Assembly: GCA_000708835.1 (NCBI GenBank)
Contig: DF237386.1
Coordinates: 1 to 64,000, forward strand
DNA from: Klebsormidium nitens
Lineage: Eukaryota; Plantae; Klebsormidiophyceae
DNA length: 64,000 nucleotides
Reading direction: 5' to 3'
A program made the position numbers and the translations under genes. Each line of letters begins with the position of its first letter. The stretch's first letter is position 1. The notes under the pieces are model-generated. The model was not told the DNA's origin. It saw nothing but the letters and a program-made list of their open reading frames with translations, and searched no databases. Shown in pieces: positions 8,901 through 43,600 of the stretch.

Positions 8901-11495
8901 GAGGCCCATGGCAGCCTCGGCCTAACCGCACTAGTATTCGAGGGCAGTTCAACTCATAATTACCTAGATTGGAATTGGAAGCATGGCCCTTGAGGGTTCA
9001 AACCCCACGTTATGGGGAGGGGCTAGTGTCTGCTTGACCTCGACAAATACAAAGAGATCCCTACAACTAAGCTATCCACCTCAAAGAGACCCCAACAACC
9101 TCACTCACGGCATCAGACCAGAGTTTGAATGCTAAAAGCAATGTCAGGATGGCTGGTCCGTGCAAGGCAGCAGACTCGACAATCAGAAGCGCCGTCTCTT
9201 AACATGAGCAGTCGAAAACAGCCACGTTCAAAGCATAACGGCGTTGATCTTGAGGGAAGACGGTGCCAATGTCCATTGGCACCGGAACTTCATTGGCAGG
9301 AAAGATATCAACAAAATATGTGAAGTAGGTTCGAGCAACCAGCTCTATTTCACAGGAGCTGCAACTTCAACCCACACTTCAACGCCAAGCACTATGTTTC
9401 TTCATTTTAAGACTCTGGGAAAGTTGTTCCATAAACCATCAACAACTTGCAATCGAAAACCGTCAGTGTTGCTGGCATCAGCAGAACCGAGAAATGTTAT
9501 ATCAGATGAAGCACCATCGCCGCAGAACGATAAGTGCCAGCCATAGGAAACACAAACTGCCAGCCAATTTCTGGGTTCTCCTGGAAACCACTTGGACGAC
9601 AAGGGGAGCAAACATGCCACATCAACAGCGCTTTCGCCCAACCATTGCTTGCACTGAAGAAAAAGCGTTGAGGACTCTGTCCGTCCACTTGCTGGACTCC
9701 GTTCGCTTGAAGGAAGAGAGCAGACACTTGTTGTAGAAGGGAAACGGGACATTTACGTTCATCGATGTATCGACAGAGCCGACCAGAAAGGAAGACACCC
9801 ACAGACATTTTCCTGTGCCTTCAAGTGAGAAGAACAGTCGGAAAAACCGATTGGCATCGGAGCAGCCTCAAAAAGTCCTGGAACTGTGTCCCAGTAGTAG
9901 CTCGTCATGGCCAAATGGCTAACAAGATATCCGAATGTTTTTCCAAGCGAGAAGATGCCAGCGCCCAACCAGAAGGTGCATATCAGTAGCGCATACTTCA
10001 ATAAACCATGCGCGCTCTAGGATGGGTTCAAAGCCCAGCTACGACCCCCCCAAAAAAGGAAAGACACGCACATTCAGGCACTCGTTACGCTCGGCTCTTT
10101 TCCTTCGTAAAAACAGTGCCCCTTCTCCAAGGCCCGGGAAAATAGAAACACTGCCCCCCTTCCGATACTCTCGGGACGCAACACACAAACACTATCTTCA
10201 AGAGTAAACTTTGCCAATTACCTGGTTGCATCAGGGCCTGGGGGCTCGTACACCGTTGCCTTGTACTCTGCGGGCCCCACGGGCGTCTTCACCTCCACAG
10301 TCAGCCGCCACATGAGACCGGCCACCACTTGCTTGGTTGCAGAGACAACGCGGACGAACTTCAGGTCGGGCGCATTCTGCACAGAATACGACAATCTCGT
10401 TTCAAGAGGTACAAGGGGCAAAAAACCTTCTAGCTGGACAACTGCGTGCATAGCTACCACTAGCTTGGTTGCAGACAACTCGAGGACGGACGTGAGGTCG
10501 GTGAGTCTGCAGAGGGTACAACAATCTTGTTATCTATAGAAAGACTGCCAAAGTACCTCCTATATCTGGACGACTGCGTGCATGCAATGGAGTTTTGTGG
10601 TGCATTCCTGAAAACGAAAAAACCCCTCGTTCCTTGCAAGGAAGTGGTGAAGCGTCAATCCTCCAAAATCTGGCTGTTACGCTTGAAGAATCCTGGCAGA
10701 ACCAAGTGACTGGTTGCTGGCATCGCTTGTCGATGCCAATGCACAGCATGCCACTTACACTCCTTGAAGTTGGACCGCTGTCACAGTAGAAGATCAATTG
10801 CATTGAGCTCCTGCCGAAGAAGTTGCAGAAAGAAACAATCAAGGACACCTGAACAGCCCAGCTTTTCGTTTCCAAGGAATAGCTTTTCTGTGCCAAAGCT
10901 TACGGAAACTCTTCGGACAACCAGGCAGAATCATCTTTGCAAAATGCTAATATTTCCGTGCCGACAATAAGAAAAGCAAACATACAAAACCAGCGGCTAA
11001 GCCAAGCAGAACTCGCCCTTGCGCTGCGCATGACGCCTTTTAAATCATTCAAACACCAAGAGTCCAGTAGTTTTCACATCTTCTTCTCTAACATTGCACT
11101 GAAAAAGACTTACATTGCAAAAAACCCTCCTGCACGGAGACACAAACCTCTGGCAAGAAAGAAACATGGTCTCTCGTCACCGATGAACAACAGCCTGAAA
11201 AGTTCCTTGCAAATGTAAGGACCATTTAAACACTACTTAAACAGCGCACCTGCTCTTTGGCAATTGTCGAGACCACATACTTCCCAACCTCTTCCGCGTC
11301 AGGATCATTGCTGCCGCCGACATCCACCTGACCCCCCGGCATGGGAACTCTCTGTGCCATTGGACTGCTCTTCCCAGAGTTCCCAACCAAACCAAAGGCT
11401 AGAAGCAGAACAGCCAAACTTCCGACCAGTGCCAAACCTATCAACCCGGAGCACCCTCTGCTGGATGCCGGTCGCTGCGGACCGCCTGCGTGCAT
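5947..11495 (-). CDS. Carboxy-extended phytocystatin (cysteine protease inhibitor), 4 exons, ~261 aa
   Basis: Exons 11495-11250, 10376-10222, 6906-6669, 6093-5947, all GT-AG and phase-consistent. N-terminal hydrophobic segment, PMPGG, QVVAG reactive loop (ATKQVVAGLMW), and a second cystatin-like domain with the ARSNSLVK (SNSL) motif typical of plant C-extended cystatins. Confidence 0.9.
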
Positions 11496-11499
11496 GACC

Positions 11500-13322: not shown

Positions 13323-16262
13323 ATGTTCACGGCAAGGAGGAAGATCCAGAAGGAGAAGGGCCAGGAGCCCGATGAGTTTGAGGAGTCGGTGGCCCAGGTA
13401 AGCCGCTGGATGCAACACATGTGTTCCTTGTCAGGACGCTTGGTTTTTGCTGTTGTAGGATACTTATGGTTGTAAGGGTTGACGGAGAAGAGCAGTGGGC
13501 AAACAGGCACGTGCAAGAGCGACCTTTTGCGGAATGCACCGACAGAGTTTGCATTGAAGGTTTGTCCTTCAAAGAATTTGTTTTGGTGAATGCATGGTCT
13601 GTGTCGGGAAGCAAATGATCACCTGTTTAGATGCGGAACGAGTATTTGTAGTGGTGTTGGTTATTACCACCAGCCAGCCCTTGTGTTGTATGTATGCTGG
13701 AGGACAAAATGTTTTGCTTTTGTGTGACGTTTCATAGGAGTCGATCGTTGTTGGGGTGGCGCAAGTGTTGTATCCTCGGAAATGATGAGAAACTGTCGCT
13801 CTCTACCAAGGGCTTGCTTACGCAAGTCGCTGCGGATTTCGACAATTTGCACGTCAGTCTGATCCATTGGAGCAACCATATTTTGAATGACGTTTCATAG
13901 GAGTTGAGTGTTGTTGGGGTGGCGCAAGTGTTGTATCCACGGAATGATGAGAACTGTCGCTCTCTACCAAGGGCTTGCTCACGCAAGTCGCTGCGGATCT
14001 CGACAATTTGCACGTCAGTCTGATCCATTGGAGCAACCATATTCTGAGTTTGTATTCTGAACCAGAAGTTGACTTTTCAACCTTCTCTTTATTTCGGAAC
14101 GGCTTTTCTCAAGTTGCAAGAGTTGAAGGGGGTTTTTTGGTTTCCCTTGCACAGGACCTTGTTTTTCCTGTCAAGTTGGTTGTCAGGTACGGGTGCTATG
14201 CCAGTTAAGGGATTTGGGATTAAACCGTTCCATTCTTCTTGGTGTGCCCCTACCCTCGACCACATGCTAAGCACATTCGAACGGTGTGAAGTGGTTCTTA
14301 GCCCGCCTCACTGCCTTTGCAAGTGTGCGAGATTCCAACAAGCTAAGCTTCATAAATTACATTAGAGATCGTGGATTTGGTTGCAAGCCGCAGCTTGCAA
14401 TTGCACTTGAGCCTGGTTGCACGACTGTTGCGATGTGCCTGATTAACATTCAAGAAAAGCAGGTGAAGAAAGTGTGGGGCTTAAAATTCACGGCCTACAC
14501 TGTTGGAGCAAATCATAAGGGTCAGGAAGAGAGAGGTTATTGAGTCTCCAAAGGGCATCACAGGAGTGGTTTGAAAGCTTTGTAAACCTCCACACGTATT
14601 TCATATGTACCTGCACTGGAAATGCTGCAAAACCGACTTCAAGCCGCCTCAATGGGTTGTTAGAGTCCACGAAGGACTCCTTTCTGTCCCGACAACCTTT
14701 TCCTCGTTGTGAAGCAGAGTTTTCATTCCTCTTAGGCCCTGTTCGATTTGGAGGCGATCAATGATGAGCTCAACATTAGCCTGGATGATCAAATTGCTGG
14801 CACTTTTGAACATTCTGACAGCCGGTTTTCCCGTACACTTTTGCTTTCCCTGGCTTGGTGTGAAGGGCAGTGTCAATATTTCCAGGCCCTGTTCGACCTG
14901 GAGGCGACCAACCAGGAGCATAAGGCCGACCTAAAAGACCAGGCGGAATTGCTGACACTTGGTTCCACACAGCTTTCCATGCAATTTGATAGGTACCCTG
15001 TTCTGAAGCATAGTGTCAATATTTCCAGGCCCTGTTCGACCTGGAGGCGACCAACCAGGAGCTGAAGGCCGACCTGAAGGACCTGTACATCAACACCGCG
15101 CGCGAGATCGACATCACGAGCCAGCGCAAGGCCATCATCATCCACGTGCCCTACCGCCTCCTCAAGGCCTACCACAAGATCCACGCCAGGCTCGTACGGG
15201 AGCTGGAGAAGAAGTTCAGCGGCAAGGTGAGGGGTTCGGGTCCATGCTTTTTTAAGGCTTTGATTTTGTGGATACAGCTCTTTATGTCAATCGCCTTGCT
15301 GATTATAATACTCGTTCCTCAAGATCCAGGCCAGGGCTGTGGGGGAGCTTGATAAGAATTTAGTGGCAAGGTGAAGGGTTCGAGTTACATGAAATTCAAG
15401 GGGTCCGGCGCCCTCGGGCTCCAGAAATATAGAGCTTAGGAGCCCAATGGGCTTCCCGTTTCTAGGAGGCGCATGGCAAGAGGCACGTTAGGTTTGTGCG
15501 GGAGCTTGAGAGAAAGTTTTAGCAGAACGGATGTTCTTATCTGCATTACCAACGTGGAGTGATGTTCTTCTCGAGTCCCTGGTGTCTGAACAGTCATCGG
15601 CGTAGCCTGGATAACAGGTCGATAGGAACTCTCCTTATACGCTACGAGCGGCCGTGGCTGTGCTGCGGAGCTAGAAGCCGTCTTCACGACTCTGTCTGCA
15701 GGATGTTGTGTTGGTGGGCACCCGGCGAATCATGAAACCCCCGAAGAAGGGCTCCTCCGCGACGCGCCCCCGCAGCCGCACCCTGACGTCCGTCCACGAA
15801 CAGATCCTGGAGGACCTGGTCTACCCCACCGAGATCGTCGGCAAGCGGATCCGATACCGCCTAGACGGCACCCGCCTCCTCAAGGTACTACATTTGAGGT
15901 CCTAGAGCTGAAGGGCTAGGTCTTTTTTGTTCTCGGGTCTTGGAACTGTGAATGTCTTAGATTGTTTGCTACTTTAAAAGGCCTTGTTGTGCGTTCCGTT
16001 TGCATTTAGTATGCCCAAAGAGTAGGTCGGTGGTTCTGTCTACTCGCTAAATTTGAAGTTTCCCGCCCATGCATCCGATCAGCAACTTCTGTAGAGCTTG
16101 TTGCTGAATCACGCTCTTCGATTGCAGGTCTACTTGGACCCCAAGGAGCGGAACACGACGGAGTACAAACTAGAGACTTTCGGGGGGGTGTACAAGAAGC
16201 TTACTGGAAAGGAGGTTACCTTTGAGTACCCCCCTGAGCAGCAGCAATCCACTGTTGCCTAG
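13323..16262 (+). CDS. RPS7: 40S ribosomal protein S7 (eS7), 4 coding exons, 196 aa
   Basis: Exons 13323-13397, 15029-15226, 15702-15884, 16128-16262 translate [187 protein letters not shown]. This is the recognisable eS7 sequence. Confidence 0.97.
13778..13865 (+). ncRNA. Intronic box C/D snoRNA, copy 1
   Basis: Terminal stem gga/tcc, box C ATGATGA (13782-13788), box D CTGA (13859-13862). The 14 nt ATTTGCACGTCAGT immediately 5' of box D are complementary to the conserved LSU rRNA motif ACUGACGUGCAAAU. Sense orientation in a ribosomal-protein intron. Confidence 0.85.
13941..14026 (+). ncRNA. Intronic box C/D snoRNA, copy 2 (tandem duplicate)
   Basis: gga-ATGATGA (13944-13950)...ATTTGCACGTCAGT-CTGA (14020-14023)-tcc; near-identical to copy 1, offset 161 bp. 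Confidence 0.85.
14725..15028 (+). repeat. Two decayed tandem copies of the RPS7 exon-2 acceptor and exon start
   Basis: cttag|GCCCTGTTCGATTTGGAGGCGATCAAT (14736) and ttccag|GCCCTGTTCGACCTGGAGGCGACCAACCAGGAGCATAAGGCCGACCT (14886), versus the true exon at 15029. Confidence 0.9.
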
Positions 16263-16701
16263 GTCGTTGCGCATCTTTGCTGGAACAGTTTTCGACCTGG
16301 ATTCTTGCCGGGTGTTTGAGTCATGTGGATTTAAAGCCGGTGCTCTTCTTCGATGTCATTGCATCTGCGGTTGGATGTTGGGCGCGGCAAGTAGACCGGA
16401 TGAGGCCGGGCTCTGGGGCGGAATTAAGCTACTTCTTCCTATGCCAATGCTTTCTACATGTGTGCGTCTAGTGATGGCATGCATGAAAGGTGAGTTCGAT
16501 CACCTGCAGATTGCAACATCGTGCAAGTTATGGTTTATAAGCCGATGCAAATATACCGTCAAGTACACTCTGTTCTATAAAGGCTTGAATCCCAAGAGTG
16601 TACTTTTCCATTCATTGGGTCACTGCCGGAGTACGTTTGTAGAGCAAAAGGGCCGGCCTCTTCTCGACCAACATGGACCCATGAGACATCATGTCAAAAA
16701 C

Positions 16702-18424: not shown

Positions 18425-21400
18425 ATGGAAGAACCCCTGCCCGGGGCTTTCCACCGGGACATTGCTGACGGGGACCAAAGACTTCTGGATGAGCTGGAGA
18501 GCCTGCGGAAAGAGAACCTGCTGTATGCAGAAAAGCTCAGCAAGTGAGTGATACCTCCTCAAGTTCACATGGCAGATGAGTATCCAGTGGTGACCCGCTG
18601 TCTCCTATACCTGCATGGCTCTCTTCATGCATTCAGCACCACCTGAGTACCTTTAGTGTCCATCCTTTCGTCCATTGTACAGCAATTTACCATGCCTGAC
18701 TGGCCACTTTGACAGCTCGGAAAGCGAGTCAAAACTCCGCGCTTGTGGATTTGACTTTTGGGTATAGCAGATGATGAAGAAGCAGGAGTGGGAAGGAGAT
18801 AGCTTGGGCATGCTTTGGCATAGGCGGCTCCACTTCTGCACGAAGGCCTGCCTAGCTTCCTCCAGCATGTCGACTGCACATGACCAGCAGTTTGCACCAA
18901 CAACTCTTCGATCCTCTGAAAGCAAACAGCCTTCACAAGTATCTAGCCTGCTCTTGCACATTGTTCAACAATACAACGTTTCAACTAAGAAAGAAGAGGG
19001 GGAGATAGGTAAAATGTCATATGAATTAGAGGCATTAAAGCCTGGCCGACTGAATCAGAGTCATTACCACCTTTTAGCAGCTGCTGGATACCACTGATCT
19101 GAAGCAGTCGACATAGCTGCAAGCACGTGTATTGTCTCTGGTTTATGGTTGTTGAGTCAGCTGCATTATGCACCTCCCATCCCAATCCTTTCGTTCAAGA
19201 TATCTGATCACTGTGCCCATTTTACCACTTATAAAGTCCGCGCTACACCTACAGCTTCCTATAGCAGCAAATAGCCAGCAGAAAGCAAGCCCTTGTCAAT
19301 CTGCAACCTGGCGGCAGAGTGTTACGAAGCTGTTCCTAGCAAAGTGAAAGATCCCCAATGTTCCACACCTTTCAGACCCTTGACATGTTCACACCAACTT
19401 TGCAGGGTCAACTCTGAGAACGTAGCGCTCTGGGACCAGGTCGCCACCCTCAAGCGCATCCTGCTAGAGAACCGCATTCCCTTTGCCCCTCGCACCGCAA
19501 ACGGTGCTTCCAAAGCCTTCCAAATCCCCTCCCGCCGCAACAGCAACGATGGAGGCAGAATCTCCGATACTACTGCATCTCGACGGGAGAGCCTGTCGTC
19601 GCGCGAGAGCCGGTTGTCGGTCAGCAGCGGGGGGACGGAACGGGCAGAGGAGTTGTCCCCCCAGAGCGGCGGCGCCAAGGATCCGGGGCAGTTCCCCCCG
19701 ATCAGAAAAGCGCCAAATAAGGAGCTCACTTTTTCAATGGGGGACCTGTCACCGATTGGGGAGCTGACTCCGTCGGGAACCCCGCTGCCGGGGGGGGTAC
19801 CAAAAGAGTCTCCTCCTGCGGGGGTCACCAAAAGCAGGCTGCCGAGGCCCCAGGAGGGGGGGCATTCATCTGCTGCCAGCACGCCTAACGGACACCCCCC
19901 ACAAGACTCACCGGGGAGCTCTTCCGATGCAGCGGGGAAGGGGCGGACGTCTTCTTGGAAAGGATTCCAGGTCAGAGGCAGCGCAAAGATTCATCCTTTG
20001 GGGGGGGATGAGGAGGTGGCTGCGTCAACAAGGGAGGGCCGGGGGGTAGAGCAGCATGTTTCTCACACTTCGGGGGGATCGAGATTGCTGGGTTTGCGGA
20101 GGGGAACGAAGTCGAAGCTCAACTTCAAGGAGCTTTGGCGAAGGGCGGCGCACACGGTGGTCAGGAACAAGCAGATGGGAAAGACCGCAGTGAAGTGGAC
20201 GGTGAGGATTCCTTTGCTTCGGCCTCTTTCCCAGCTTCTAGGTCGTTGGCAGAATCGTGGACAAGTGGTCTGCCTCTTTAACGGGCAGCCAAACGGGTCT
20301 CCAATCGATGCAACAGCTCCATGCAACTCAGCCAACGTGGCTTGCAAACCGCGAGGCTCTACTCCCGTCTCGAGTTGTTTTGATCGATGCCCCAAGGAGG
20401 CCCAGTCTTTGCAGCTCAGCCAATTCCGACGCTGTGGCGTCCGACTCCCCGTAGCCATCTTTGCTAGCTTCTTCTCCCACCCTCCCTTAGACAGCAATTT
20501 TCCTAACCAGACAAGATTTGTCGGGACACCCAGGCTTCTACCCGTAGGTTGCTAGAAAACTTCCTTATCTTGCTGGCCACCACGATTTATTTCGGTAGGA
20601 TCTTCTCCGCATGATGGCGGCTATAGAACATTCTTAGAGGTGAGTAGTTTGAATGCTTTTGACGAGAAGGAATGGTGATCGATTGGTCGCCTATACGGGG
20701 CTTCCGGGCAGGGTCCAACATCAGATGCGAACGTCCTTCCCCAGACACGAAGTGAGCCACTTGTAGATCCACCGAACGTGCTACGGTTCCGTTCTTCACT
20801 TTCCTTTCCGCTCTGTCATTCCGCTGCAGATCGTCATCGACCAGGTCAAGGCACAGCAGAACACTTACTTGGCGTCCCTCCTGCGACCAGTTTCGGCGGA
20901 CGGGCGGTTTCGAAAGTCCTGGGACCTCTTGCTGACGGTGGGTCTCTTCAGAAACGTCGGTTATTCTACTTCTTCCAATTTGAGCTTACCAGTTGAGTCC
21001 ATTCAGTCGAGGGCTACAACTCGGTCTACTTGAGCATTGCGACGGTTTCATCCGATCGTGCGCTACGCACACAGCTGTCGTTTTCAACACTTTAAAAGAC
21101 CGCCTTGTGAACGTCACAACAAACTGTCGGTCCCTCATGAGTTTCATAGCCCTATACCCCGGAGATGAGCGCTGAATCTGTGTGGTTATTTCCAGCACCG
21201 TCAGTATGGTGTTGTCGAGCAATGGTTAAGTATATTTTCTCGAGCACTGATTTGATGCTTTTCTTGAGCCCGCAGATTTTCTCTGGTCTACATCGTGATT
21301 GTCGTGCACTACACGGTCGCGTTAACATTTTAAAACACAAATTTTTGAACGAACCAACGAAGAAACGACTGTAAGTATCCTCGGTTTCTCAAACCTCGGG

Positions 21401-24400
21401 GGTGCTAGGTTGTGTTTTCCTCGAGTCCCGCAGGTTTGTCTAGTGTACATTGTTATCGTCGTGTTCTACACGGTCGCCTTCAACAACTCACTAGACAAGG
21501 TCGCGACCTAACAAAGATAGTCACTTTAAGAACCTCAAACTACGGAGGTGCTAAGAGTTCCGAGCTTCTCGATTCTCGCGAATTTGTCTAGTCTACATCG
21601 TGATCGTCGTTCCCTACACGGTCGCCTTCAACACTCAACAAAGAAAGTTATAAACATATCAATTAACAAAGAATCGAGTCCAGATCTCCTCACTTCCAGA
21701 ATGTTGAACCTCAGAGGTGCTCAGATTGTACCTCAGAGGTACTAAGAAATGATTGTTTTCGGGTCTCGCAGGTTGGTCTCGTCTACATTGTGATCGTGGT
21801 CCCCTACACGGTTGCCTTCAACATCTCAAAAAGCAAAGCGACGAACATGTCAATGAAAAACGAATCGCACATCTCCTGTTTTAGAACCTCAGACTCCCGA
21901 TCGGATTCTAAAAATGTGACCTTCGCGAGTCTCGCAGGTTTGTCTAGTCTACATCGTGATCGTGGTCCCGTACACGGTCGCGTTCAACATCTCAAGCGAT
22001 CACAGAGACCAGCCCGGGCTGTACGCGATCAACTGGATACTCGACGTCGTCTTTTTCCTAGACATACTAGTCAACTTCCGGTCGACCTATACAACCGGTC
22101 GAGGGAAGGAGGTGCGCGACCAGAAGAAGATCGCGGTGCACTACCTCAAGACGTGGTTCGTGCTGGACGCGATCTCGGTGAGTGAATCTGCCTTCGTTTC
22201 CGTTCTTTGATCCGTTTCCGTTTCCGTTTCCGTTTCCGTTTCCATTTCGTTGTTGTTTCTGATTGTTGTTTCCGTTATGTTTCCGGCCCGTCGGGGTTTC
22301 TCTTCCCATCTGGTCTTTCTGGCTCCCCAATCTGTCCATCTGTCCTATTCCATGTTGTCAGAAGGGCGTTCTACAATCGTCTGCTTCCATTTCCTGATGC
22401 CGCCTTGCGAGACACCTTTTCTGGATTGTTGCGGCATCGTAACGAACTCGTCATTCCCATAAGCGACCCAATGAGCCCGCCTGTCAGAATGGTTGATGCT
22501 CCTGTCGTTTCTGAGAACTGGTGAGCAGACAGAGAAGCAGTGCGGTAGTTGGCTTTGCGCGGAACTGAATGGCCATACGCAAAGCTGTCAACTCAGTGAA
22601 GATCCACTCCAACTCGCCATTGGAACGACGAGCCACAGCAAGGCGTGAACCGAACAGCCGCATCTTATAGGGTAACTTGCTTCGCTCCAAATTTGTGCCA
22701 CTCATGTCCTGAAAACGGCAGTCGAAAGCGGGCCGCGGACTCATATTGTGACCTAAGTGCGGGCTTTCGTTCGCAGGTGATGCCGCTCGCTTTCATGGTG
22801 CCGAGCAACAGCGCAAACCACAACCTGCAACGGCTGCCGCTGCTGCTCAAGATATTCCGCCTGAACAAGCTCGTCAAACTGGTGAGCTTCTCACCCAATC
22901 TGCAACTAGAATGTCCTCCCCCGTGAAACTTTTCCGTTAAAGGGTTTGGGATAGCGTCAGTTGTTTCGTTTCGAAGCGCGGGGAATTTGCTGCGTTCAAT
23001 AGGGGGGTTAGTTGGCTAATTCGACGTCGGTCAACCCGGTCCACCCGGTAAAGGTTTCGGCGAAGAGGATCAAAAGGAAAAAAGCCTTACCGTTTTGAAA
23101 AATGTAACGTCAACAAAGGAGGCAAAACCAATCTTCTCCTCCTTCGCCTCTGCGTCACACTGATTCACCCAGCTTGATTTTCCGTCTTGCCACAGTGCAA
23201 TCATCCTGTTTCATACCGACGGAACGGGATGATCAAGCTTGTGTAATCTGGATCTCTTGTAGGGTTTAGTCTCCGTTAAATCGAGGGCGACGCAATGCAG
23301 ACTCTTTCGATGCAAAAGTGCAATAAATGTAGACCAGCTACCGCTTGACAACGTGAGCTGTCGTCCCCTGTGGGTGTTGATGTGAAAAAAAGCACTTCTG
23401 CTCCCAGTTGCGGGTGCTGCGGCTGAGTTAGACGTTCGAGGCGCTGGAGAACCACGTGCCCGCCGGGCTGCTTACTCTGCCATCCCGCACTGCAAAAGCC
23501 GCTTTGAATTCTCTTTCGCGTAACTTATCAACGTCGAACCTCCCAGTTGCGGGTGCGGCGCCTGAGTTCGACGTTCGAGGCGCTGGAACCACGTGCCGCA
23601 CGGGCTGCTTACTCTGATCATCCCGCACTGCAAAAGCCGCTTTGAATTCCCTTTCGCGTAACTTATTAACGTCGAATCTGCTCCCAGTTGCGGGTGCTGC
23701 GGCTGAGTTCGACGTTCGAGGCGCTGGAGAACCACGTGCCACACGGGCTGCTGACGATCATCAAGTTCTTCATGCTAATGGTTGTTATCGGCCACGTCAC
23801 CGCGTGCCTCTTCTACTTCATGGCTGTCGTCGACAATCTGAACCCCAGGTCCTGGCCTGCTGAGGTAAGGATTCTTTCTTCTTGATTATTGTCTAGATTC
23901 GAGTTACTAAGTCCTCTGGGGCGCTTGAACTGCGTTGAAGCTCAGGAGGGAACGAGACTTCGCGCTGTTTCTGCTTCAAGGCTGTCGGCAATAACCTGAT
24001 TCCAAGTCATGGCCGGCTCAGGTGGGCCAACTTTATCACTACAATCTCCTAGCTTGCAAATTTTTGGGGCGATCGCTCTGCGTCTTGCACCTGTAATATG
24101 AGCTCAGGAGGGAGCCTGCCGGCAGCCTTCTTTATAGCTTATAGGCTTTGGTGAACGGGAACCTCAAGAGCTGAGGGACTACTTGACGTGTGAAATTCGT
24201 CCAGCGGTGAAGGTAACTTTGGGTTTTGAGATACTTTGGGAGAGGTACAAACAAGAACGTGAAAAGAGGATGCATTTTTGTTCGTGCCTCTTCCAAGAAC
24301 GTGAAATGAGGGGGGCATCCGTATTGACTTCCGAAAGCAAAGACGGATTCGGTAAGGTTGACCGCGCTCAGAGGAGGCCACAACGTGATATTTGAGAATT

Positions 24401-27400: not shown

Positions 27401-29909
27401 TCCCTAACCTTCCTTTCCAGGTCCCTTTCTTCCACGGGAAGCCCCCCCAGTTCATCTCGTCCCTGGTCCTCTGCCTGCGCCCCGAGTACTTCGGCCCCGG
27501 CGACTTCATCATGCGCGAGCATGACATCGGCAAAGACATGTACTTCATCGTGGAGGGCCACGTGCACGTTCTGAGCGCGCGCGCTGGAACATTTGTCAAG
27601 AAACAGGGGGAGTACTTTGGGGAGATGGCGCTGATCACCGGGATGAGGAGAAGCGCTTCCTGTACCGCGCAGACGTACTGCGAGCTGTACAGCCTGAGCA
27701 AGGAGAACCTAGAACGGGTCCTCCAGGTGGGTGTGAATAAGCCCTTTCAATCCGTGTTGCATGGGCTCTTCGTAAATGGTACAACAACCCTAATGAGAGT
27801 CAATCTGGCTGTGAGTTGGAAAGCCTGAACAAGGAGAACCTGGAGCGGGTTCTGCAGGTGGGTGTGAATAGGCCCATTATCAACCGTGTTGCATGAGCTT
27901 CGTTCGGAATAGATATCACACTCCAAATCTTCAAGAGACGATTCTGGCTGGGAGTTGTACGGAGCAAGGAGAACCTGGAACGGGTCCTGCAGGTGGGTGT
28001 GAATAGGCTCTTTCCATGCGTATCGCTATCACTATCGACATTCTTCGATATCATTCGGTTTGCTTGACGATTTGGAATTCTATTCCGTCCGCGAGCTGTA
28101 AAGCCTGCGCAAGAAGAATCTGGAACGGGTCCTGCAGGTGGGTCTGAATGGGCCCTCTGCTCGAGTATCCATTGCGTTGGAGTTGGACGACTCCTGAGCT
28201 CCGCAGATGGGTATGGTTGGGCTAGTTCAAGAAAGAATCCAAGTATTTTGGGGTCAGAGTCCGCTCGTGCTTTGGTTCTGGTTAATGTTTTTCTTGACGT
28301 TTGACCGCTCAGGTCGGTCGAGCAAGGAGAATCTGAGTCCGACGCCACCGCGCCCTATATTCCTTTTCGATGTGACAAGATTCTTCCCAGCTTGATCAAG
28401 TCAACCTCCCTCCCGCAACGTTGCGCCACGTGACTCGTGACTTGGCGGCGCGGGTCCAAGTTCAGATCCATTCTCTTTTTCGCGCTTCTCATTCGCCGTT
28501 CCTCCGACTTTCCTTCCGCTTTGCTCCTCTCGAGAACTTCATCTCCTCCTCCGCAGGAAGGGCCCACATCTGGATGCGGTTTCCCAAGCGAGGGCCCGGC
28601 GGATCACGGCCCTCCCATGAGCGTCTGTTTTTGACCTGGTTTCTGCTCGAATTGCGTCTTTGCGCCCTTCATTTCTGAATCTTTGCATCCCCCGCCGCCC
28701 AGGTCGGGGCCGGAAGTGCCCGCGGCTTTTCCTTTCAGGTCCTTCGAACCTTACTATTTCCCGCGGTCCCGGAAAGTCAGGAGTGTGCTCCAAATCGTAT
28801 TCCAAAATCGAAGCGCTTGTTTTCACACATACTCCGCTGACCGAGGACTGACCCCGAGATCGCGCTCGACTAACACGAAGCGAGGACCTTGCTCGTATAT
28901 TTGCGTCAGATCGTTATCCTTGCTAAGCCTTTCTCATATTGTCGTTTCGCTCCTCTCTTTCAACTCTATGAAGGCTAAGATGTTCCCGCCCTTCCGCCGG
29001 ATTGTTCGAGAGTCACGCAGATTACCTGAAGAGAAGATGGCCCGCACGCATGCGTCAGCCCGTCGCACTCGTTGAGGTTTTCCGCCCTGCCGTTCTGTTC
29101 AGATCTTCAAAAATTCCGTCGCAACACTCGCTACCGCAGGACTGGCTCAAGATCGCCTTCGACTTTTGTACCCAGGCGCTGCCCCGCATGCGTCACCTCG
29201 TCCCTCTCGCTTCAGCATCCCCCACGCGAGTGTTGTTACACTCCACTCTTCTCACCCCTCCCCGCCGAAAACGCTAACGTCCCCTTCTCCCCCGATCCCC
29301 GCCCAGCAGAACTGCCCCGACAAATGCGCGCAACTTTTGACAGCGGGGGCTTGGCCTCTGTGCGCCAGCTCATTGATCGTCCAAAAATTCTTCCCTTGGA
29401 AATTTGAGTCCCACCCTTTCCCCCCATAAAGCGCAAACGTTTTCCGCCCCCCTGCAGGACTGGCCCGAGATCGCGCGCGACTTCTACAGCGAGTGCTTGG
29501 CCAGTATCCGTCGGCTCTTCTTTCGTCCAAAGTGGTTCTCATTTGAAGATCCGTCCCACCCTTTCCCTCATAAATCTCTAACATTTCCTCCCCCCCTCCG
29601 CAGGACTGGCCCGAGATCGCGCGCGAATTTTACAGCGAGGGCCTAGCCCGCATGCAGGACGCGGGGCTGACGCCCAAATCGAGCACGGCCTTGCAAGCGG
29701 CGGCCGTGGAGGAGCAGCGCGCGCTCACAGGCGCGCGGGGGCGGCGACGGACGGGCGACGCGGCCGCAGCGTTAATAGATGCCGACGAGTCGTCGTTCCG
29801 GGCCGCGCTGGTCGGGAGTCCGTATGGCGCGATCGGGGTGTCCGAGCGGAGCCTTGTGGAAGGAGGAGACGCGCAGACGAGACACCGGGGGAGGCGAGAA
29901 GGGAGATAG
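18425..29909 (+). CDS. Voltage-gated-type K+ channel with cyclic-nucleotide-binding domain (6TM-1P, CNBD superfamily), 11 exons, ~858 aa
   Basis: Exons 18425-18543, 19406-20201, 20830-20937, 21938-22177, 22777-22881, 23688-23864, 24621-24792, 25943-26097, 26558-26650, 27421-27726, 29604-29909, phase-consistent. S4-like LLKIFRLNKLVKLLRVLRLS; pore SLYWAFSTLCTVGYGD; C-linker; CNBD (DFIMREHDIGKDMYFIVEG...YFGEMALITGMRRSASCTAQTYCELYSL). First and last exons are less certain. Confidence 0.9.
21265..21937 (+). repeat. Array of 4 decayed copies of the channel exon-4 acceptor and exon start
   Basis: Variants of (c)cgcag|gtttgtctagtctacatcgtgatcgtggtcccgtacacggtcgcgttcaaca at about 21275, 21433, 21582 and 21771, before the true exon at 21938. 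Confidence 0.9.
22210..22247. repeat. (TTCCGT)n microsatellite just inside the channel intron after exon 4
   Basis: tccgtttccgtttccgtttccgtttccgtttccatttc. Confidence 0.9.
23398..23687 (+). repeat. Two tandem copies of the channel exon-6 acceptor and exon start
   Basis: ctcccag|ttgcgggtgctgcggctgagtt...gaggcgctggagaaccacgtgcc with acceptor AG ending at 23407 and 23546; true acceptor at 23687. Confidence 0.92.
25440..25942 (+). repeat. Three decayed copies of the channel exon-8 acceptor and exon start
   Basis: Variants of gtgacgtcag|gtaacatgtcggtgctggtagcgaacttggaccaggaagcggcgcgccaggagcg at about 25450, 25607 and 25772; true acceptor at 25942. Confidence 0.92.
27090..28150 (+). repeat. Junction copies on both sides of channel exon 10 (2 acceptor-side, 3 donor-side)
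   Basis: Acceptor side: ttcttccacggaaagtcccccagttcatctcc (~27100) and cag|gtcccattcttctgggaaacccccccagttcatctcc (27240). Donor side: caaggagaacctggaacgggtcctgcag|gtgggt ending at 27857, 27992 and 28137, versus the true donor at 27726. Confidence 0.92.
28835..29603 (+). repeat. Array of up to 5 progressively decayed copies of the channel terminal-exon acceptor and exon start
   Basis: Variants of cgcag|gactggcccgagatcgcgcgcga with junctions at 28845, 29020, 29139, 29309 and 29457; true acceptor at 29603. Confidence 0.85.
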
Positions 29910-37600: not shown

Positions 37601-40600
37601 ACGAATTCTTCCAGCCGTTCTATTTCCTTTCTTTAGTTTGTTGAGAACGTACATTCTCAACATTTCCCTTTCAGACGCCGGCGCGCTCCTCCCCTTGGAA
37701 GAAGCCAAACCCGACGTCGTCATCGAAGGGGGCCTGCGCATCCCGGGGGGCATCTACGACCGGTTGTTTGCGTATCAGCAAACGGGCGTGAAGTGGTTAT
37801 GGGAGCTCCACTGCCAAAAAGCCGGGGGGATCATCGGGGATGAGATGGGCCTCGGGAAAACGGTGCAACTGGTCGCCTTTTTGGGAGCGCTACACTACTC
37901 GGGGCTGTACCAACCGAGCATCGTCGTGTGCCCGGTGACTCTACTCCGGCAGTGGAAGCGGGAGGTGCAGGCGTGGTAAGTGTCAAGCTTGCGGAGTTGT
38001 TTCGCTCCGGTTGATATCGCCGGGCGAACTTACTTCAGTCTAAACGAGTGTGCTCTTCCCGGTCATTCAGTCGTACTTCTTTAGAGCTTGATTGCCTTCT
38101 TAATGCTGCTTGTGCTTTTGGCTGAAGTACGCCTTTGTGAAAGTAATCCGGAGCAAGCCCGTTGGTCCATGCCTGCTCTGCATGACACTAGAACGAGGAG
38201 GTGAAAGGACTTAAGGTTCCGCGTGTCCGAAAACTGCTGGGCTCACAAGCTTTGCATCTCCGGTCCGCGTACAGCTTTGTACACTGCCTCTCTAGCAAAA
38301 TTCTGTACCAGGTCTGTACTCCTCATGCCACGTGATCGATTGAAGCGTTCTCATTGGTCCGGAGGACCGGAGATGAGCGCTCAGCCATTTCGGTCGACGC
38401 GAAACCTTAGACCTATGACTGATGGCTTCTGTCGAATGCTGCCGCTGATGCTTCGGCGGGACATTTGTAACACTAGTGCTCTGTATGATCCAAGAGCCGC
38501 GGAAATGAGCTTACCTGTGTTTGTAACCCGATTGCTTCTGGGAGCTGTGATCCCGGTTTGTCACCGCTTGACAGCTTCAAAGATTTCTGGAGTACCTTCT
38601 CCAAACAGAGTCCTGCTCCTTGAAATGGCAATTGAATGCGATTCCGCAATCTCTACGTGGTGGTAGACCTGGCGCTCGATCACGTGGTCATCTCTTTAGT
38701 TTCCTTGCCTTTTTCTGCCGCATGTCCGGCAATCGTTTTTATCCCCACCATCCGCCCAGGTATCCGCGATTCAAGGTCGCCATACTGCACGACTCCGCAA
38801 CACCATCTGGTGGCGCTCCGAAAGATGAAGAGGATCCGCGGAGCAGCGACGACGAGAACGAGAGCGAGGAGGAAATCCAGACGGCGAAGTCCAAGGCTGG
38901 AAAGAGCCACAGGTAATGGTTCGCAAGTCCTTTGACGCATTGAATAATAGCCGATGGCGGATTTGAGTCAAATCTTTCGTCGGCTAAAACCGTGTGGTCA
39001 TTGATGACGAACTTTACCCGCCTCTTCTTGTCTGATTGTCAAACTAAACCCACACCTTCCTCTTGGGCACCCACGCTACCGTACCAACACGCCGGTTGGG
39101 CAGATTTTTGCCCAATAATCAATTACGTACGTTCTGAAAATTGGGCAACTCATTTTGGAATTTTTGGAAAATTTGAAATTTTTAAAATATATGCAGAAAA
39201 CCATTTTTTCACCAGCCAAAAAACGTCAAAGATCAAATATTGGAATTTTGGTTCATTTGAAATGTTTGGGCAGAAAAAATATAATGGTATTGAATGTATT
39301 GAATTTTTTTGGGCAAAATTAAAAATAATTAATTGATGCCCAAACGGCGTGTTGGTACGAGTACTTGAGTAGCATCCCTTTCAAATGAAGGACAATCCGC
39401 AAGCTGTTCTATTACACACGCCATGCCTTTCGGGCCGGTTGCACCGGCAACAAAACAGAAGAAGCTAGCTTAAGAAAGGAAGATATGAAACAGAGAAACC
39501 TCGCCTTTCGCAGATGGGACGCTCTAATTGCTGCCACGGTGAACCGCCCCGACGGGCTGCTGCTGACGTCATACGAGCAGCTGCGGATCCAGCGGGAAAA
39601 GCTGCTGGACATCCCCTGGGGATACGCTATCCTGGACGAGGGCCATAGGATACGGAACCCGGACGCCGACATCACGCTGGTATGCAAGCAGGTGAGGGAG
39701 CGGGTGAAAGCTGACGTCGTGGTCGTTTGTTTGTGGCAGGTGCTCATTGCTTCTCGAAGTTCCCTAAAAAACATAGCAGCAGAGAACGGCGAGTGATCCA
39801 TTTACAACACTGTCTTTTTGGAGCACAACAACCCTTCTTTCATCGTCCTTCAGTTCAACTTCTGCCAGCTACAACCTGTGCAACTTGTGACGAATCCACT
39901 ATTCGTGGGGATAGGCTTTTGGAATGCTCCATCTGGAAGCTGCAATCTCACAGGATCTTGAGAGGCTACGATGGACTTTTGGAGCTTGGGCGTCTTCTTG
40001 TCCTCTGCTCGAAGTTGATCAGTATGTGTCTCCTTCTGGTTGACGTCAATACGACTCTTTCGATCCGCGTTCTGCAGGTGCACAGATTCATGGGATTTTT
40101 ATGTCCGACTCCGTATGTCACTACCACAGGAGGTCGCAAAACAATGTACTTCTGGTGGTGGAATTGTCAACTCCCAAAACGTTTCAGCGGCAACTGACAT
40201 CAAACCTCCAAAGACCTGTTCTTGCAGCTGCAAACGGTACACCGTATCGTCATGTCCGGCGCTCCCATCCAGAACAAGCTGCCACAGTCCGCTTTCCAAC
40301 ATCGCAAGTCAAAGGCAACACGTGATCATCAAAATCAGAAATTCATGACATCCATAAGCCTTCCAGCGAAAACCTGACATTCTCAAAATTCTGTTTTGCA
40401 GCTGCAAACGGTACATCGGATCGTCATGTCCGGCGCTCCCATCCAGAACAAGCTGACGGAGCTCTGGTCGCTCTTCGACTTCGTCTTCCCCGGAAAGCTG
40501 GGCACACTGCCCGTCTTCCAGTCGCAGTTTGCGCTGCCGATCGCGATTGGCGGGTACGCCAACGCGAGCCAGCTTCAGGTAAGATTTTTTCCTGATTTCA

Positions 40601-43600
40601 TAAGTGGAGTCTTTGTTATGATTCCAAATTCTAGGTTAAACACTTCTGCTGGTTCGTATTCAAGAGGCAGGATACTACTACGCAGTTTCTCCCGCCGGTT
40701 GCATTTGGCGGGTGTGCCGTGCAACACGCTATAGATAGGTCCTGTTTTCACCAGTTTGCATTTGATGATGCTCGAGAAACAGTCCGTGCTGAAAGCCAGT
40801 TTTTGGACGGATCAAAAAGCCGTTGTTTTAAAGAGGAAAGGAAGAGACCACGGTAGAGAGCATGGATTCTTGCGGTGGCCCACAAAGCGGCTAGGTCGTT
40901 CGGCATGTAATTCTCCAATCGTGTGTTCAGGACTGGTTTTTATACTGCAGATTTCGAGGATCCATGCACTGGAGTTGGGTCTTTTGGTCGCAAAAGGCAA
41001 CCTTCTTGACCAGTAATTCCAAGGCGCAGCTTTTTTGGCTCCTGTAATTGTTTGCTAACATTCCGCGCATTGAAACACCCACATGAGGTTCCATATGTCA
41101 GTTTTATGACGCTTTTTCCAGTATTATTGATGTAGTCCATCTTTTTGTTGGGGGGAAAGCGGAGATACCTAAATTAGATTCAATATTAAGGTAATTACAG
41201 AACCCGAATATCCGTTCCGCGTATGCTTTAACAGGCAATGATAAGTTACTCGTCACTGGTGCAGGCGAGCACGGCTTACAAGTGCGCAGTGGTTCTCCGC
41301 GACCTGATCATGCCGTACCTGCTGCGGCGCATGAAGGCCGACGTAGAAGCGCAACTTCCGAAGAAGACGGAACAGGTAAGGACATTTGGCAAGGTCGTAA
41401 TTCAACTCCATCAAGCGTCCCTGGAGAAGCCAATCAAAACGTAGAAAACATGCACACGGTTTGCGTACTGCCAAGCTCTTTATCGGCTTTGATGTCAAGA
41501 TACCTTTGACAGTCAACGGCTATCACTTCTAACGCTCGGAGCGAGAGTAGAAAGGATTTGCAAGAGCGATTGCACGACGTCACATGGATGCGAGGGTGCT
41601 CCATTTCTGTGAAATGGATTCTTTTGGTGAGGGCAGATCAAGGTGTCTTCACATGACACCTTCACAATCTGCCTGGTTTTTATTGGGACGATGCTGAGCG
41701 CTTATTTTGGGCAATCGCAACGCATTGGCTTCCCCTTTCAGCGACGCTTGCCCTCAAGTTACGGCTAAGTGATGTGATTGGCTAACTGTTCCCAAGTATT
41801 AACTCCTCCAACATTGACATGTATTACCACGTGCTCTTTTCCAGCGTCGTATGAGGTCTAGGGAATGCTCTGAGAGGATCGGGACGCGGTACTTCCAGCC
41901 TGATGACGTCAAACAGTCATGTCGTGCTGGCGTCGGCTGTTGTAAATTCTGGTAGGTCCTTTTCGTCTCGCTTACGGAAGAACAACGACGGGTCTACCGC
42001 CCTTCCTGGCGTCGAACGAGGTCGAGGCGATTATCGCTGGAATCCGGGATGCACCTCTGAACTTGTGGATGCTGACGTCACCTCCTGCACTTGTACCAGG
42101 TTCTCTTCGTCTCGCTGACGGAAGAACAACGGCGTGTCTACCGCTCCTTTCTGGCGTCGAACGAGGTCGAGGCAATCATTGCTGGGGACCGAAATGCGCT
42201 GTACGGAATTGACATCATGCGCAAAATCTGCAACCATCCCGACTTGTTGGAAAGGGATGAGATGGCGGCGCATGAGGACTACGGGAACCCGGAGCGGAGC
42301 GGCAAGCTGAAAGTTGTTTCAAAGGTATGGGTCAATTCTTCAGAACTTGAGAGTCAAGAGGGGAAGGCGGAACAAAGCAGCTTCCGCTTTGACATTGCCA
42401 GATTGTTGAAAGGAGCAAAGTGAAACGTGTGGTCAGGTACAAGTTTTGCAGGTTGTCTTCACATGCTTAGGTATTACAGCTTCTGCCAACCAGGTTGCTG
42501 ATCCGAATGAGAATTCAATGCCAATCCTCACTGTGTCTCCGTGCAACCCGGGCCTGTAAAGGGCATTTAGTTCTGCTTCTCTTTTGCAGGCTCGCAATTG
42601 ACAAGATTTCCGTCGCTGCTTACGTCATCACGTAAATCGTGTCAGCACCGGGTCTCCCCGTAACACTCTCGAAAAGTCGCAGTGCTGTCGCACGTTCCTC
42701 CTCTTCCAGAAATAGAACATGCTGAACCCTGTACATTACATCCGCCGACGTCAGTGCTAAGCTGACTTCGTCACCGTGTCCCACTGCAGATTCTGCCCCT
42801 CTGGAAGGCGCAGGGTCACCGCGTTCTTCTCTTCTGCCAGACGCAGCAGATGCTCGACATCATTGAGAACTTCGTGGTCAATGTGCCGTTTGTGTATCGG
42901 CGGATGGACGGCAACACGCCCATCAACCAGCGCATGGCGATCATTGACGAGTTCAACAACTCGGATGCCGTCTTCATCCTTATTCTGACCACTAAGGTGA
43001 GGATTTTAGGTTCGGATTCAGGATTTGATCTGGTTTTTAGCCTCGGTTTAGCTTTGGCCGAACACGCTGAAGTAGCGCTTGTCGAATATCGACAGTTCAA
43101 CAAACCGGATGCGGTCTTCATCCCTATTTTGACCACTAATGTGAGGGGTTTTTCACATCAACAATTGGGTTTGATTCTCCGTTCTCTTTGTCACATGCTG
43201 AACTGCGGATTGTCGACAACTCGTGTGATTTTCTTAGTGGCTGTGGCTAACAAGGCCGGGAAAATCATCGATCCCATGCAAACAGACATTGCGCTTGTCT
43301 TGATGCTCTTCTTTGACCTTCCCAGTCAGAGCATTGGAATGGCTGATGAGAATAGTCCAGATAGAGGACCTATTTGACAGCTTGGAAGCAACCATTCCCT
43401 CTCTTTTGGTTCTGCGATTGACAAAATGCTGCTTTAGGATCACCCGCATTCTGCCTTCTATTGTAAGTAAACTTGGTTGATTCCTGGCAGTAGGCAGTAA
43501 CTTCGACCTCCTGAATCTATATGTTCTTTCTTGGCAGTGCGTTGATCATGCGCGTGAGTTTTTACCGTTTCTTTTCTCCAGGTCGGTGGGTTAGGCACTA

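Follow-up and report, generated by a model that had tools for sequence, protein, structure and literature searches.

Two open questions in genome evolution are by what route introns lengthen and what gives rise to new splice sites. Here, we describe four neighbouring genes of the green alga Klebsormidium nitens in which head-to-tail, decaying copies of the genes' own exon-intron borders, each about 150 bases long, account for about 29% of intron sequence (approximately 5.0 of 17.3 kb). An intronic copy of a gene's own splice junction is termed an echo, and "the window" denotes the whole 64,000-nt stretch of DNA analysed. A preliminary description had claimed decayed tandem junction copies in cystatin, RPS7, K+ channel and CSB genes, which raises the question of whether these copies are real, what restricts their size and how they arise. 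The gene identities agree with profile domain matches: cystatin, Ribosomal_S7e (RPS7), SNF2/Helicase_C (CSB-like), and ion-channel plus cNMP-binding domains (K+ channel).

Repeats were detected across the whole window by self-BLAST and Tandem Repeats Finder, yielding 14 local direct-repeat arrays within 10.3-43.3 kb with base periods of 131-180 nt. Local direct-repeat offsets are 130-191 nt or multiples thereof, with none intermediate, and neither tool found a local repeat with a period of 25-120 or 200-1000 nt in the window. For the junction scan, 64 modelled junctions were probed (junction +/-50 nt) using the introns of other genes as null (99th percentile score 24.5, maximum 29, 1,652 comparisons) and a score of at least 26 as the echo threshold; one microsatellite match was discarded. 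The scan yielded 31 echoes at 14 of the 64 junctions, bearing out the claimed copies, and all 31 lie on the side predicted by tandem duplication and given in the preliminary description, with acceptor copies upstream in their own intron and donor copies downstream. No echo was found on the wrong side (41.0 versus 33.0 kb searched). The other 50 junctions have no echo; among them are all those in the 5' half of the CSB-like gene and in a gene of six exons. A scan blind to annotation found 16 arrays, 15 at junctions and one formed by a snoRNA-like pair. The arrays and echoes are listed by position.

6863..7173, minus strand: weak junction echo, first cystatin paralogue; edge of exon 6669-6906 versus a copy 274 nt upstream, about two units
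10321..10583, minus strand: cystatin-2 acceptor array; real exon 2 start 10376, one echo with junction at about 10506; unit 130-132 nt (56 nt exon plus 75 nt intron)
13718..14047, plus strand: C/D-box snoRNA-like tandem pair, RPS7 intron 1; units 13774-13869 and 13937-14030; period 161-163 nt, copies 93% identical
14680..15083, plus strand: RPS7 exon 2 acceptor array; real exon start 15029, echoes 14886 and 14736; spacings 143 and 150 nt, exon part 55 nt
15168..15560, plus strand: RPS7 exon 2 donor array; real donor after 15226, echoes 15370 and 15528; spacings 144 and 158 nt
21253..21995, plus strand: K+ channel acceptor array; real exon start 21938, echoes 21772, 21582, 21434 and 21277; spacings 166, 190, 148 and 157 nt, exon part about 58 nt throughout
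23397..23763, plus strand: K+ channel acceptor array; real exon start 23688, echoes 23547 and 23408; units 139-141 nt
23790..24030, plus strand: K+ channel donor echo; real donor after 23864 (RNA-confirmed), echo 24021; spacing 157 nt
25286..26034, plus strand: K+ channel acceptor array; real exon start 25943 (RNA-confirmed), echoes 25773, 25608 and 25451; spacings 170, 165 and 157 nt, exon part about 88-92 nt, older trace farther upstream
26900..27491, plus strand: K+ channel acceptor array; real exon start 27421 (RNA-confirmed), echoes 27241, 27094 and 26953; spacings 180, 147 and 141 nt, exon part 71 nt
27678..28170, plus strand: K+ channel donor array; real donor after 27726 (RNA-confirmed), echoes 27857, 27992 and 28137; spacings 131, 135 and 145 nt, exon part 49 nt, CAG/GTGGGT intact in all three echoes
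28528..29655, plus strand: K+ channel last-exon acceptor array; real exon start 29604 (RNA-confirmed), echoes 29458, 29310, 29140, 28846 and 28557, with weaker copies in between
40030..40455, plus strand: SNF2/CSB-like acceptor array; real exon start 40402, echoes 40228 (exon part 96% identical) and 40078 (weak); spacings 174 and 150 nt
41790..42197, plus strand: SNF2/CSB-like acceptor array; real exon start 42100, echo 41956 and an older echo near 41790; spacings 144 and about 166 nt
42913..43216, plus strand: SNF2/CSB-like donor echo; real donor after 42996, echo 43140; spacing 144 nt
49109..49445, minus strand: weak acceptor echo, P450-like gene; exon edge 49137 versus a copy about 302-304 nt upstream, about two units

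The two weak echoes (6863/7137 and 49109/49411) fall beyond the range first described (10376-43150). The largest array, at acceptor junction A29604, has five clear copies, the stated maximum per junction, plus two weaker ones. The snoRNA-like pair, whose matches to the C/D-box family snoZ122 are below threshold, is alone among arrays of this size class in lying away from junctions. Array 23397..23763 is the youngest in the window; its upstream-most copy has just 11 nt of intron in common, and a source for the 55-nt stretch between its copies was not found anywhere in the window. Echo-bearing introns have a median length of 788 nt versus 465 nt for those without echoes (P=0.0002), which together with the echo share of intron DNA upholds the claim that introns grow. 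The last K+ channel intron (1,877 nt) is mostly occupied by its donor array and the last-exon acceptor array together. A MITE-like insert at 39080-39359 is the sole element with terminal inverted repeats and is unrelated to the arrays.

An artefact of assembly or collapse is extremely improbable as the source of the arrays, as the preliminary description had argued, and we found no evidence for one. An independently assembled DNA contig, from another assembler, spans 23700-29646 (5.9 kb) with 0 differences, the sole caveat being that DNA run X1 may share its sample with the genome assembly. Copies within an array (2-8 per array; 52-96% identity between their exon parts and that of the real exon) diverge from one another by 5-45%, which excludes collapsing or doubling, and RNA contigs of intronic parts agree with the sequence. 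Two related algae (relatives A and B), with assemblies of their own, carry arrays of the same kind, partly at other junctions. Boundaries in relative A match (+89/83/81 versus +87/88, and +72 versus +71), and at junctions with arrays of equal boundaries in two species the copies look independently derived (star-like). Arrays also turn over between close relatives: the RPS7 acceptor echoes are missing in relative A, donor echoes at 26097 are found in relative B only, and junctions are conserved in relatives without the echoes.

Unit length varies within tight, nucleosome-scale limits. The 30 echo spacings have a median of 149 nt (mean 153, sd 14.6, range 130-190), reproducing the earlier unit lengths (median about 148 bp) with the exception of a 119-nt unit, which was not found in the window. 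The exon part of the unit measures 49-92 nt (mean 66, sd 15), which puts the junction near the middle, and within the middle third in 13 of 13 measured arrays (variance test against uniform placement, P=0.003). Periods do not differ more between arrays than within them (ANOVA P=0.28). Homology extends over the full unit in nine of 14 arrays and over 54-88% of the period in the other five. At exon 23688-23864, the acceptor and donor units lie side by side, 27 nt apart and each with a junction at its centre; at RPS7 exon 2, the gap between them is 88 nt. Within an array, the boundary on the exon side stays constant (58/58/57/53, 49/49/47, 87/72/88). Since the copies of an array have one such boundary, fitting one founder followed by copy-number change, the 28 lengths originally listed represent about 14 independent events rather than 28. 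The copies are real tandem duplicates of the genes' own junctions; the recurring process that had been proposed is not required at each of them. A nucleosome or Okazaki origin would agree with the unit in size only, and the same length class is seen in satellite-type arrays (150-180 bp; PMC7290377) and in small DNA circles (microDNA; PMC6511871).

The copy nearest the exon is usually the best preserved, as claimed (20 of 22 ordered pairs concordant, permutation P=0.0003). Decay is about three times slower in exon-derived than in intron-derived parts. On the exon side, echo-to-real identity stays level at 0.82-0.88; it drops at the junction and is about 0.5 beyond -20. Dividing the divergence of the intron part by that of the exon part (K_intron/K_exon) gives about 2-3 in older echoes and 4-23 in many of the nearest ones. 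Comparisons between echoes again find the exon-derived part better kept, with certain echoes closer to one another than to the real exon, and diagnostic sites of exon 25943 reveal no recent transfer from the real exon into its echoes. The AG or GT is retained in 22 of 28 echoes versus 15 expected under neutral decay (P=0.009), with about a quarter dead; decoys are therefore not purged, and the seeding of decoy splice sites is confirmed. The last 10 nt of intron are likewise better kept than neutral decay predicts, and four of nine acceptor arrays start with AG followed across the junction by GT, resembling a recursive site.

RNA contigs from three runs confirm five K+ channel introns by their GT..AG joints (23864 to 24621, 24792 to 25943, 26097 to 26558, 26650 to 27421 and 27726 to 29604), with the echoes skipped by the main isoform, the form covered by these assembled Logan contigs, which drop rare ones. 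Contigs inside introns occur only in the echo-filled last K+ channel intron, one of the five, at about a quarter of exon depth. In RPS7 and SNF2, Pfam profile positions are continuous across exon borders. Separately, echoes keep open reading frames and codon bias, and a simple gene finder called echoes exons, so the automatic annotation of the K. nitens genome likely holds false exons.

The best explanation, to which we give about an even chance, is that size-restricted tandem duplications spanning junctions are tolerated and then persist as small exon-anchored arrays. Each would be founded by a tandem duplication of about 130-190 bp of genomic DNA that spans a splice junction by chance, after which the copy joined to the rest of the exon would serve as the real site and the other would become intron. 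Strict polarity, intron growth and spare splice sites follow because one copy stays with the exon and the other turns intronic; the polarity rule, being a matter of tandem-duplication geometry, is no evidence on mechanism. In introns of 250-1,900 nt, splicing would take the pair of sites closest across the exon, always the real pair, and the extra sites would thus be harmless. The real sites are used; the selection rule is one we infer from work in human cells, where sites closest across the exon are chosen when flanking introns are large (PMC9225289).

Array copy number would then shift by ordinary repeat dynamics, the exon-derived part being compared with, and probably sometimes converted by, the exon held by selection, while the intron-derived part drifts. 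The exon-derived part would remain recognisable for long, making junction arrays long-lived and conspicuous where duplicates of neutral DNA fade quickly. Gene conversion is suggested by divergence patterns only, and faster intrinsic decay of intron-like sequence could replace it, since introns of the two closest species are 55% identical versus 79% at third codon positions. A single founder per array is supported by the constant boundaries, which are the same in relative A, and by the echoes that are closer to each other. For the founding length of about 150 bp, the leading candidate would be a nucleosome-scale process, possibly staggered linker breaks flanking a single nucleosome, or a small DNA circle re-inserted; by homology, such re-insertion would result in an exact tandem duplication.

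In keeping with this account, every array contains a functional element, a junction in 15 and a snoRNA in one. Against it, uniform duplication with detection bias predicts about 6 purely intronic arrays on the most conservative numbers, or about 24 with intergenic DNA included, and one was observed (Poisson P about 0.012 and 1e-9, respectively). Chance duplication must therefore assume that junction arrays are far longer-lived than neutral ones. It accounts for central junction placement by a branch-point requirement as upper bound and detectability as lower bound, both post hoc. A strictly inherited unit length would also predict bigger differences between arrays than the ANOVA finds, which obliges the account to appeal to indels in the intron part.

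A rival explanation is mutation targeted to junctions, in which a transcription-, splicing- or chromatin-coupled process would preferentially and repeatedly duplicate about 150 bp centred on the same border, through breaks flanking a border-positioned nucleosome, R-loop ends or polymerase pausing. This strong form of the preliminary reading is possible though not probable. Neutral introns and intergenic DNA are depleted of arrays even when detection bias is allowed for, and the annotation-blind count, the central position of junctions, the narrow nucleosome-scale length class, the side-by-side units of exon 23688-23864 and the star-like copies with shared boundaries in two species would all be expected. 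However, most junctions are without echo, a single founding event explains constant boundaries more simply, the snoRNA pair has the same length class away from junctions, and the spacing of the RPS7 exon 2 units is a poor fit to a regular nucleosome array. Of similarly modest probability is a version in which Klebsormidium would undergo ongoing, chromatin-templated and junction-coupled duplication of one nucleosome's DNA centred on exon-intron borders, building a large share of its intron DNA and its spare sites; the routes might be linker breaks around border-positioned nucleosomes or small circles excised from them.

The over-kept exon parts, terminal intron nucleotides and AG or GT would also fit selection that keeps echoes as decoy or recursive sites or as splicing-factor platforms, tuning splicing, intron retention or unproductive splicing. 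Three perfect CAG/GTGGGT donors lie downstream of the real donor at 27726, the recursive-like acceptor starts and the RNA contigs inside the last K+ channel intron point the same way, and in human cells decoy exons are reported to regulate intron retention (PMC6097662). We nevertheless consider selected function unlikely: arrays turn over between close relatives, identity declines away from the exon, one site in four is dead, most junctions are echo-free and the main RNA isoform skips echoes in three runs, minor isoforms lying outside the reach of the contigs. Copying or refreshing from transcripts (reverse-transcribed pre-mRNA, splicing intermediates or RNA-templated repair) would explain the kept exon-derived sequence and the sharp identity step at the junction, as well as the conserved intron stretch of array 25943, which stops at a branch-point-like motif (CTGAC) located about 35 nt ahead of the acceptor. 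This is very unlikely as an origin, since young arrays are homologous across the whole unit, including 60-90 nt of intron, and the 4-25 intronic nt contained in the young block of the nearest echoes exclude spliced mRNA as template. The arrays lack poly(A) tracts and target-site duplications, the regular spacing of about 150 nt is left unexplained, and the young echo at 23483-23763 is homologous to intron upstream of the branch point; RNA survives only as a refreshing mechanism.

Size-restricted tandem duplication has partial likenesses among known systems. Introners form mobile families that have sequence and terminal features in common, and Huff, Zilberman and Roy reportedly found in 2016 that those of Micromonas and Aureococcus insert between nucleosomes. 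As with introners, an alga here gains intron DNA in nucleosome-scale quanta, but each echo array matches its own junction only. An introner or transposon origin was rejected: cross-gene probe scores are at background, never above 29, and the MITE-like insert is unrelated. Tandem exon duplication with mutually exclusive exons likewise copies exon-derived sequence into the adjacent intron, yet echoes hold 49-92 nt of one exon edge with one site and are absent from the main RNA contigs. In the Rogers model, tandem duplication across a (proto-)splice site is a source of introns, with cases in Drosophila (Lehmann et al. 2010; PMC2891723). The echo arrays share its short head-to-tail duplication with splice signals, copies of intron plus part of an exon, and an intron partly derived from exon; the exon-contiguous copy is used and the other spliced out (RNA joints in three runs, polarity 31:0). 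They differ in stacking 2-8 copies, in their narrow unit, in affecting about a fifth of junctions and in recurring across the genus. Intron gain of the Rogers type does not apply, as no new intron or position arises; existing introns are lengthened at junctions conserved in echo-less relatives. Satellite and minisatellite arrays (150-180 bp monomers; PMC7290377) are also head to tail, with copy-number turnover and a length class into which the median echo unit (149, range 130-190) falls. Unlike their long, homogenised, one-family monomers, echo arrays are tiny (2-8 copies, 52-96% identity), intragenic and unique to their junction, taking their sequence from the neighbouring exon border with a gradient of decay away from it. 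MicroDNA, small extrachromosomal circles with nucleosome-length periodicity that are enriched in genic regions (PMC6511871), share length class and genic origin, and the circle link is a purely mechanistic lead.

No published description of junction echo arrays was found in the literature, and they are a real, apparently undescribed way of intron growth. Their growth can be read directly, as border copies added in quanta of about 150 bp that make up 29% of the intron DNA of four genes and vary from one close relative to another. Should chromatin prove to set the length, nucleosome-scale intron growth would have a second example, one free of transposons, and the arrays would offer a tractable system for how cells ignore dozens of perfect decoy sites.

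Self-comparison of the window revealed local direct repeats in 14 arrays, located from 10.3 to 43.3 kb and repeating at base periods of 131-180 nt, and no local repeats with periods of 25-120 or 200-1000 nt; the first 10 kb and last 20 kb contain only a few micro- or minisatellites of at most 22 nt and no comparable arrays. On reading the sequence by eye, all arrays but one were found to terminate at a real exon border, and arrays are named here by that junction, for example:

15029, exon start, RPS7
21938, exon start, K+ channel
25943, exon start, K+ channel
27421, exon start, K+ channel
29604, exon start, K+ channel
15226, exon end, RPS7
27726, exon end, K+ channel

Probes of 100 nt centred on 64 junctions were compared with the adjoining introns, using introns of other genes as a null (n=1,652 comparisons, 99th percentile score 24.5, maximum 29). 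This yielded 31 true echoes (decayed tandem copies of a gene's own exon-intron junction, inside the adjoining intron; score at least 26) at 14 of the 64 junctions. All 31 occupy the intron expected from tandem duplication, and none was found in the intron across the exon (41.0 vs 33.0 kb searched). Such strict polarity is a matter of geometry, because after tandem duplication only one copy continues into the exon, namely the downstream copy for an acceptor and the upstream copy for a donor. The sole false match was a (TCCGTT)6 microsatellite at 22211-22248, starting ~30 nt past donor 22177.

A small Viterbi gene finder, with the window as its training data, supplied gene models that were then hand-corrected with RNA joints and Pfam coordinates; they are approximate except for RPS7, the K+ channel and the CSB-like gene. 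RNA contigs from 3 runs define five GT..AG introns in the K+ channel gene (ion-transport and cNMP-binding domains), with no echo copies present in the main isoform, at the following joints (exon end/start):

23864/24621, K+ channel
24792/25943, K+ channel
26097/26558, K+ channel
26650/27421, K+ channel
27726/29604, K+ channel

Pfam profiles continue exactly across the RPS7 border 15226/15702 (S7e, positions 20-85 then 86-148) and the SNF2 border 39691/40402 (positions 102-150 then 151-209). Pfam also bears out the cystatin, SNF2 and Helicase_C identities, the SNF2 gene being a CSB-like candidate only, and the best named relatives of RPS7 are land plants (~75% identity). Exact-sequence look-up of an F-box ORF for public gene ranges gave no match. 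Used ab initio, the gene finder fused some genes, split others and took echoes for exons; those at 25608-25840, 27816-27861 and 27913-27992 were called coding because they have kept open frames and codon bias. Other elements of the window are:

5950-7037, minus strand, cystatin-like paralogue whose exon has a weak junction echo, two units further upstream
10222-11495, minus strand, second cystatin-like paralogue, 4 kb from the first
39080-39359, MITE-like insert of ~280 bp in intron 5 of the SNF2/CSB-like gene, with 23-nt terminal inverted repeats (96% complementary) and an AT-rich interior
46707-47303 and 56869-57414, dispersed direct repeat of ~600 nt (identity 69%; copies 10 kb apart), one copy 3' of a P450-like gene and one 3' of a Crinkler-like gene

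Including a snoRNA-like pair at 13718-14047, 30 spacings have a median of 149, mean of 153, sd of 14.6 and range of 130-190 nt, and four longer gaps (274-304 nt) are about twice the unit spacing. These spacings reproduce the 28 hand-measured unit lengths of the preliminary description; as an independent sample, those values shrink to ~14 founding events, because copies within an array share one boundary. Exon-side boundaries are constant inside arrays (58/58/57/53, 49/49/47 and 87/72/88), which is evidence for a single founder per array, and the mean unit lengths of the ~14 founding events span only 130-165 nt. Assuming that a junction-spanning duplicate needs ~40 nt of intron (branch point) and ~40 nt of exon (recognisability), this narrow range cannot be set by splicing constraints, since units of 80-130 or >200 nt would be tolerable and detectable, yet none is seen. 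The ~150-bp quantum may have a nucleosomal cause, as proposed previously along with Okazaki fragments; its length matches that of a nucleosome. The usual satellite DNA monomer falls in the same length class (PMC7290377), and small DNA circles that originate in genic regions show a matching length periodicity (PMC6511871). The boundaries of the units flanking exon 23688-23864 (23622, 23763, 23790 and 23947; 141 nt, 27-nt gap, 157 nt) resemble a phased array, as do those flanking exon 27421-27726 (27312, 27491, 27678 and 27808; 180, 187 and 131 nt), unlike those of RPS7 exon 2 (143 nt, 88-nt gap, 143 nt).

The majority of arrays are plain tandem duplicates, homologous across the whole unit. In the youngest (23397-23763, acceptor 23688), only 11 nt of intron are common to the upstream-most copy, and the copies are separated by a 55-nt stretch without a source in the window (no convincing match; best 22 nt, 26929-26950, E=0.03), which is either repair filler or the remnant of a later deletion. 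Unit joints share at most 1-3 nt, the arrays being too old for microhomology to be read. The palindrome TGACGTCA occurs 9 times in the window vs 1.1 expected (1712, 25442, 25934, 36586, 39564, 40041, 41904, 42073 and 43701); several of them overlap a CTGAC branch-point-like motif, 27-52 nt ahead of an acceptor, and are duplicated with the echoes. It was rejected as a unit-boundary mark, as it occupies branch-point-like positions within units.

Contigs of two related algae were retrieved with exon peptides from two independent public assemblies (exon identity to the window 90-93% for relative A, the closer one, and ~82% for relative B). Both carry junction echoes, at spacings of 119-196 nt, and some of the RPS7 and channel arrays are lineage-specific. 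In relative A, echoes occur at the homologues of acceptor 24621 and RPS7 donor 15884 (intron of 798 nt vs 243 nt in the window) and are missing from the RPS7 acceptor; in relative B, the donor homologous to 26097 carries them (intron of 879 nt vs 460 nt). Two arrays common to the window and relative A have equal exon-side boundaries (+87/88 vs +89/83/81 and +71 vs +72), and each of their copies is closest to its real exon, in a star-like pattern. This fits old, continually renewed arrays and also a fixed local determinant; exon parts of 70-92 nt offer too little sequence for judging orthology, the distances being star-like yet the boundaries common.

Identities of echo parts to the real copy were taken from MAFFT pairwise alignments. 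As had been described for the acceptor arrays, the nearest copy is usually best preserved, identity dropping with distance from the exon (20/22 ordered pairs concordant, P=0.0003). Within the unit, the exon part has a flat identity of 0.82-0.88, the final 10 intron nt have 0.75 and positions beyond -20 have ~0.5, so that identity steps down at the junction. With a frozen partner, intron-part divergence should be 2x exon-part divergence; the ratio is 2-3 in older echoes and 4-23 in many of the nearest ones. In three arrays, the intron part of the second echo resembles the real one more than that of the nearest echo does, and between echoes, where neither partner is constrained, the exon-derived part is still better kept by 0.11-0.30 identity. 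This slow decay of the exon-derived part, the main puzzle of the arrays, would most simply mean that the constrained exon occasionally converts the echoes. Alternatively, intron-like sequence may by its nature decay faster; orthologous introns are 55% identical vs 79% for third codon positions: this holds for echo-free introns (26098-26557 vs L001:2631-3108 of the closest relative; shuffled control 45%), in a comparison where exons are 90-93% identical. Introns in the K. nitens lineage show much faster turnover than synonymous sites.

AG/GT dinucleotides are intact in 22/28 echoes, where local identity predicts 15 (P=0.009), so decoys are not being purged; three perfect CAG/GTGGGT donors stand behind real donor 27726. 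In every array, the real sites are the pair closest across the exon. Work in human cells has such sites chosen when flanking introns are large (PMC9225289), and the same selection probably operates in K. nitens, which would render the echoes harmless. The last K+ channel intron (echo-filled, 1,877 nt) is the only one of the five with RNA contigs inside (27735-29332, two runs; depth 2-4 vs 11-12 for exons, about a quarter), none being present in the other four. This intronic RNA could reflect slow or incomplete removal, intron retention or minor decoy-donor use.

An annotation-free scan, in which the whole window was tiled with 100-nt probes, gave 83 local matches, 74 of them inside the catalogued arrays; the others comprise a MITE-like insert, short motifs and three further junction echoes:

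6863/7137, junction echo
41833/42143, junction echo
49109/49411, junction echo

The sole non-junction array of the ~150-nt class is the snoRNA-like pair, both halves of which match C/D-box family snoZ122 sub-threshold; at gathering thresholds, Rfam gave no match anywhere in the window. Under uniform duplication, ~6 purely intronic arrays are expected and 1 is seen (Poisson P ~0.012), even granting junction arrays a generous 4.3-fold longer visibility, or ~24 with intergenic DNA counted (P ~1e-9), expectations that depend on approximate gene models and assumed decay rates. These counts show enrichment at junctions, with which targeted mutation and longer survival are both compatible as causes. 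Exon parts measure 49-92 nt (mean 66, sd 15) and intron parts 52-120 nt, the junction falling within the middle third of every unit (variance test vs uniform placement, P=0.003). This is no proof of targeting, as branch-point and detectability limits can mimic centring: the exon part is capped from above because the downstream copy must retain its own branch point, and limited from below because short-exon arrays are visible only while young. We give even chances to the arrays being survivors of ordinary size-restricted duplications, and consider a duplication process targeted at junctions rather unlikely; the remaining rivals are much less probable than either.

The process is tandem duplication at the DNA level, confined to a narrow range of lengths and with a single phase per array, and the arrays turn over between species. 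Introns with echoes are longer (median 788 nt vs 465 nt, P=0.0002), and echoes account for ~5.0 kb out of 17.3 kb of intron in the cystatin, RPS7, K+ channel and CSB-like genes, which upholds the view that they lengthen introns. New introns are known to arise by tandem duplication spanning a proto-splice site (PMC2891723); the searchable literature yielded no description of existing junctions copied in stacked, decaying units of nucleosome scale that constitute a large share of intron DNA. New points are the shared-boundary evidence for single founders, the conservation step at the junction, the centring caveat and the lineage-specific RPS7 and channel arrays. False exons derived from echoes may sit in the public annotation of the K. 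nitens genome.
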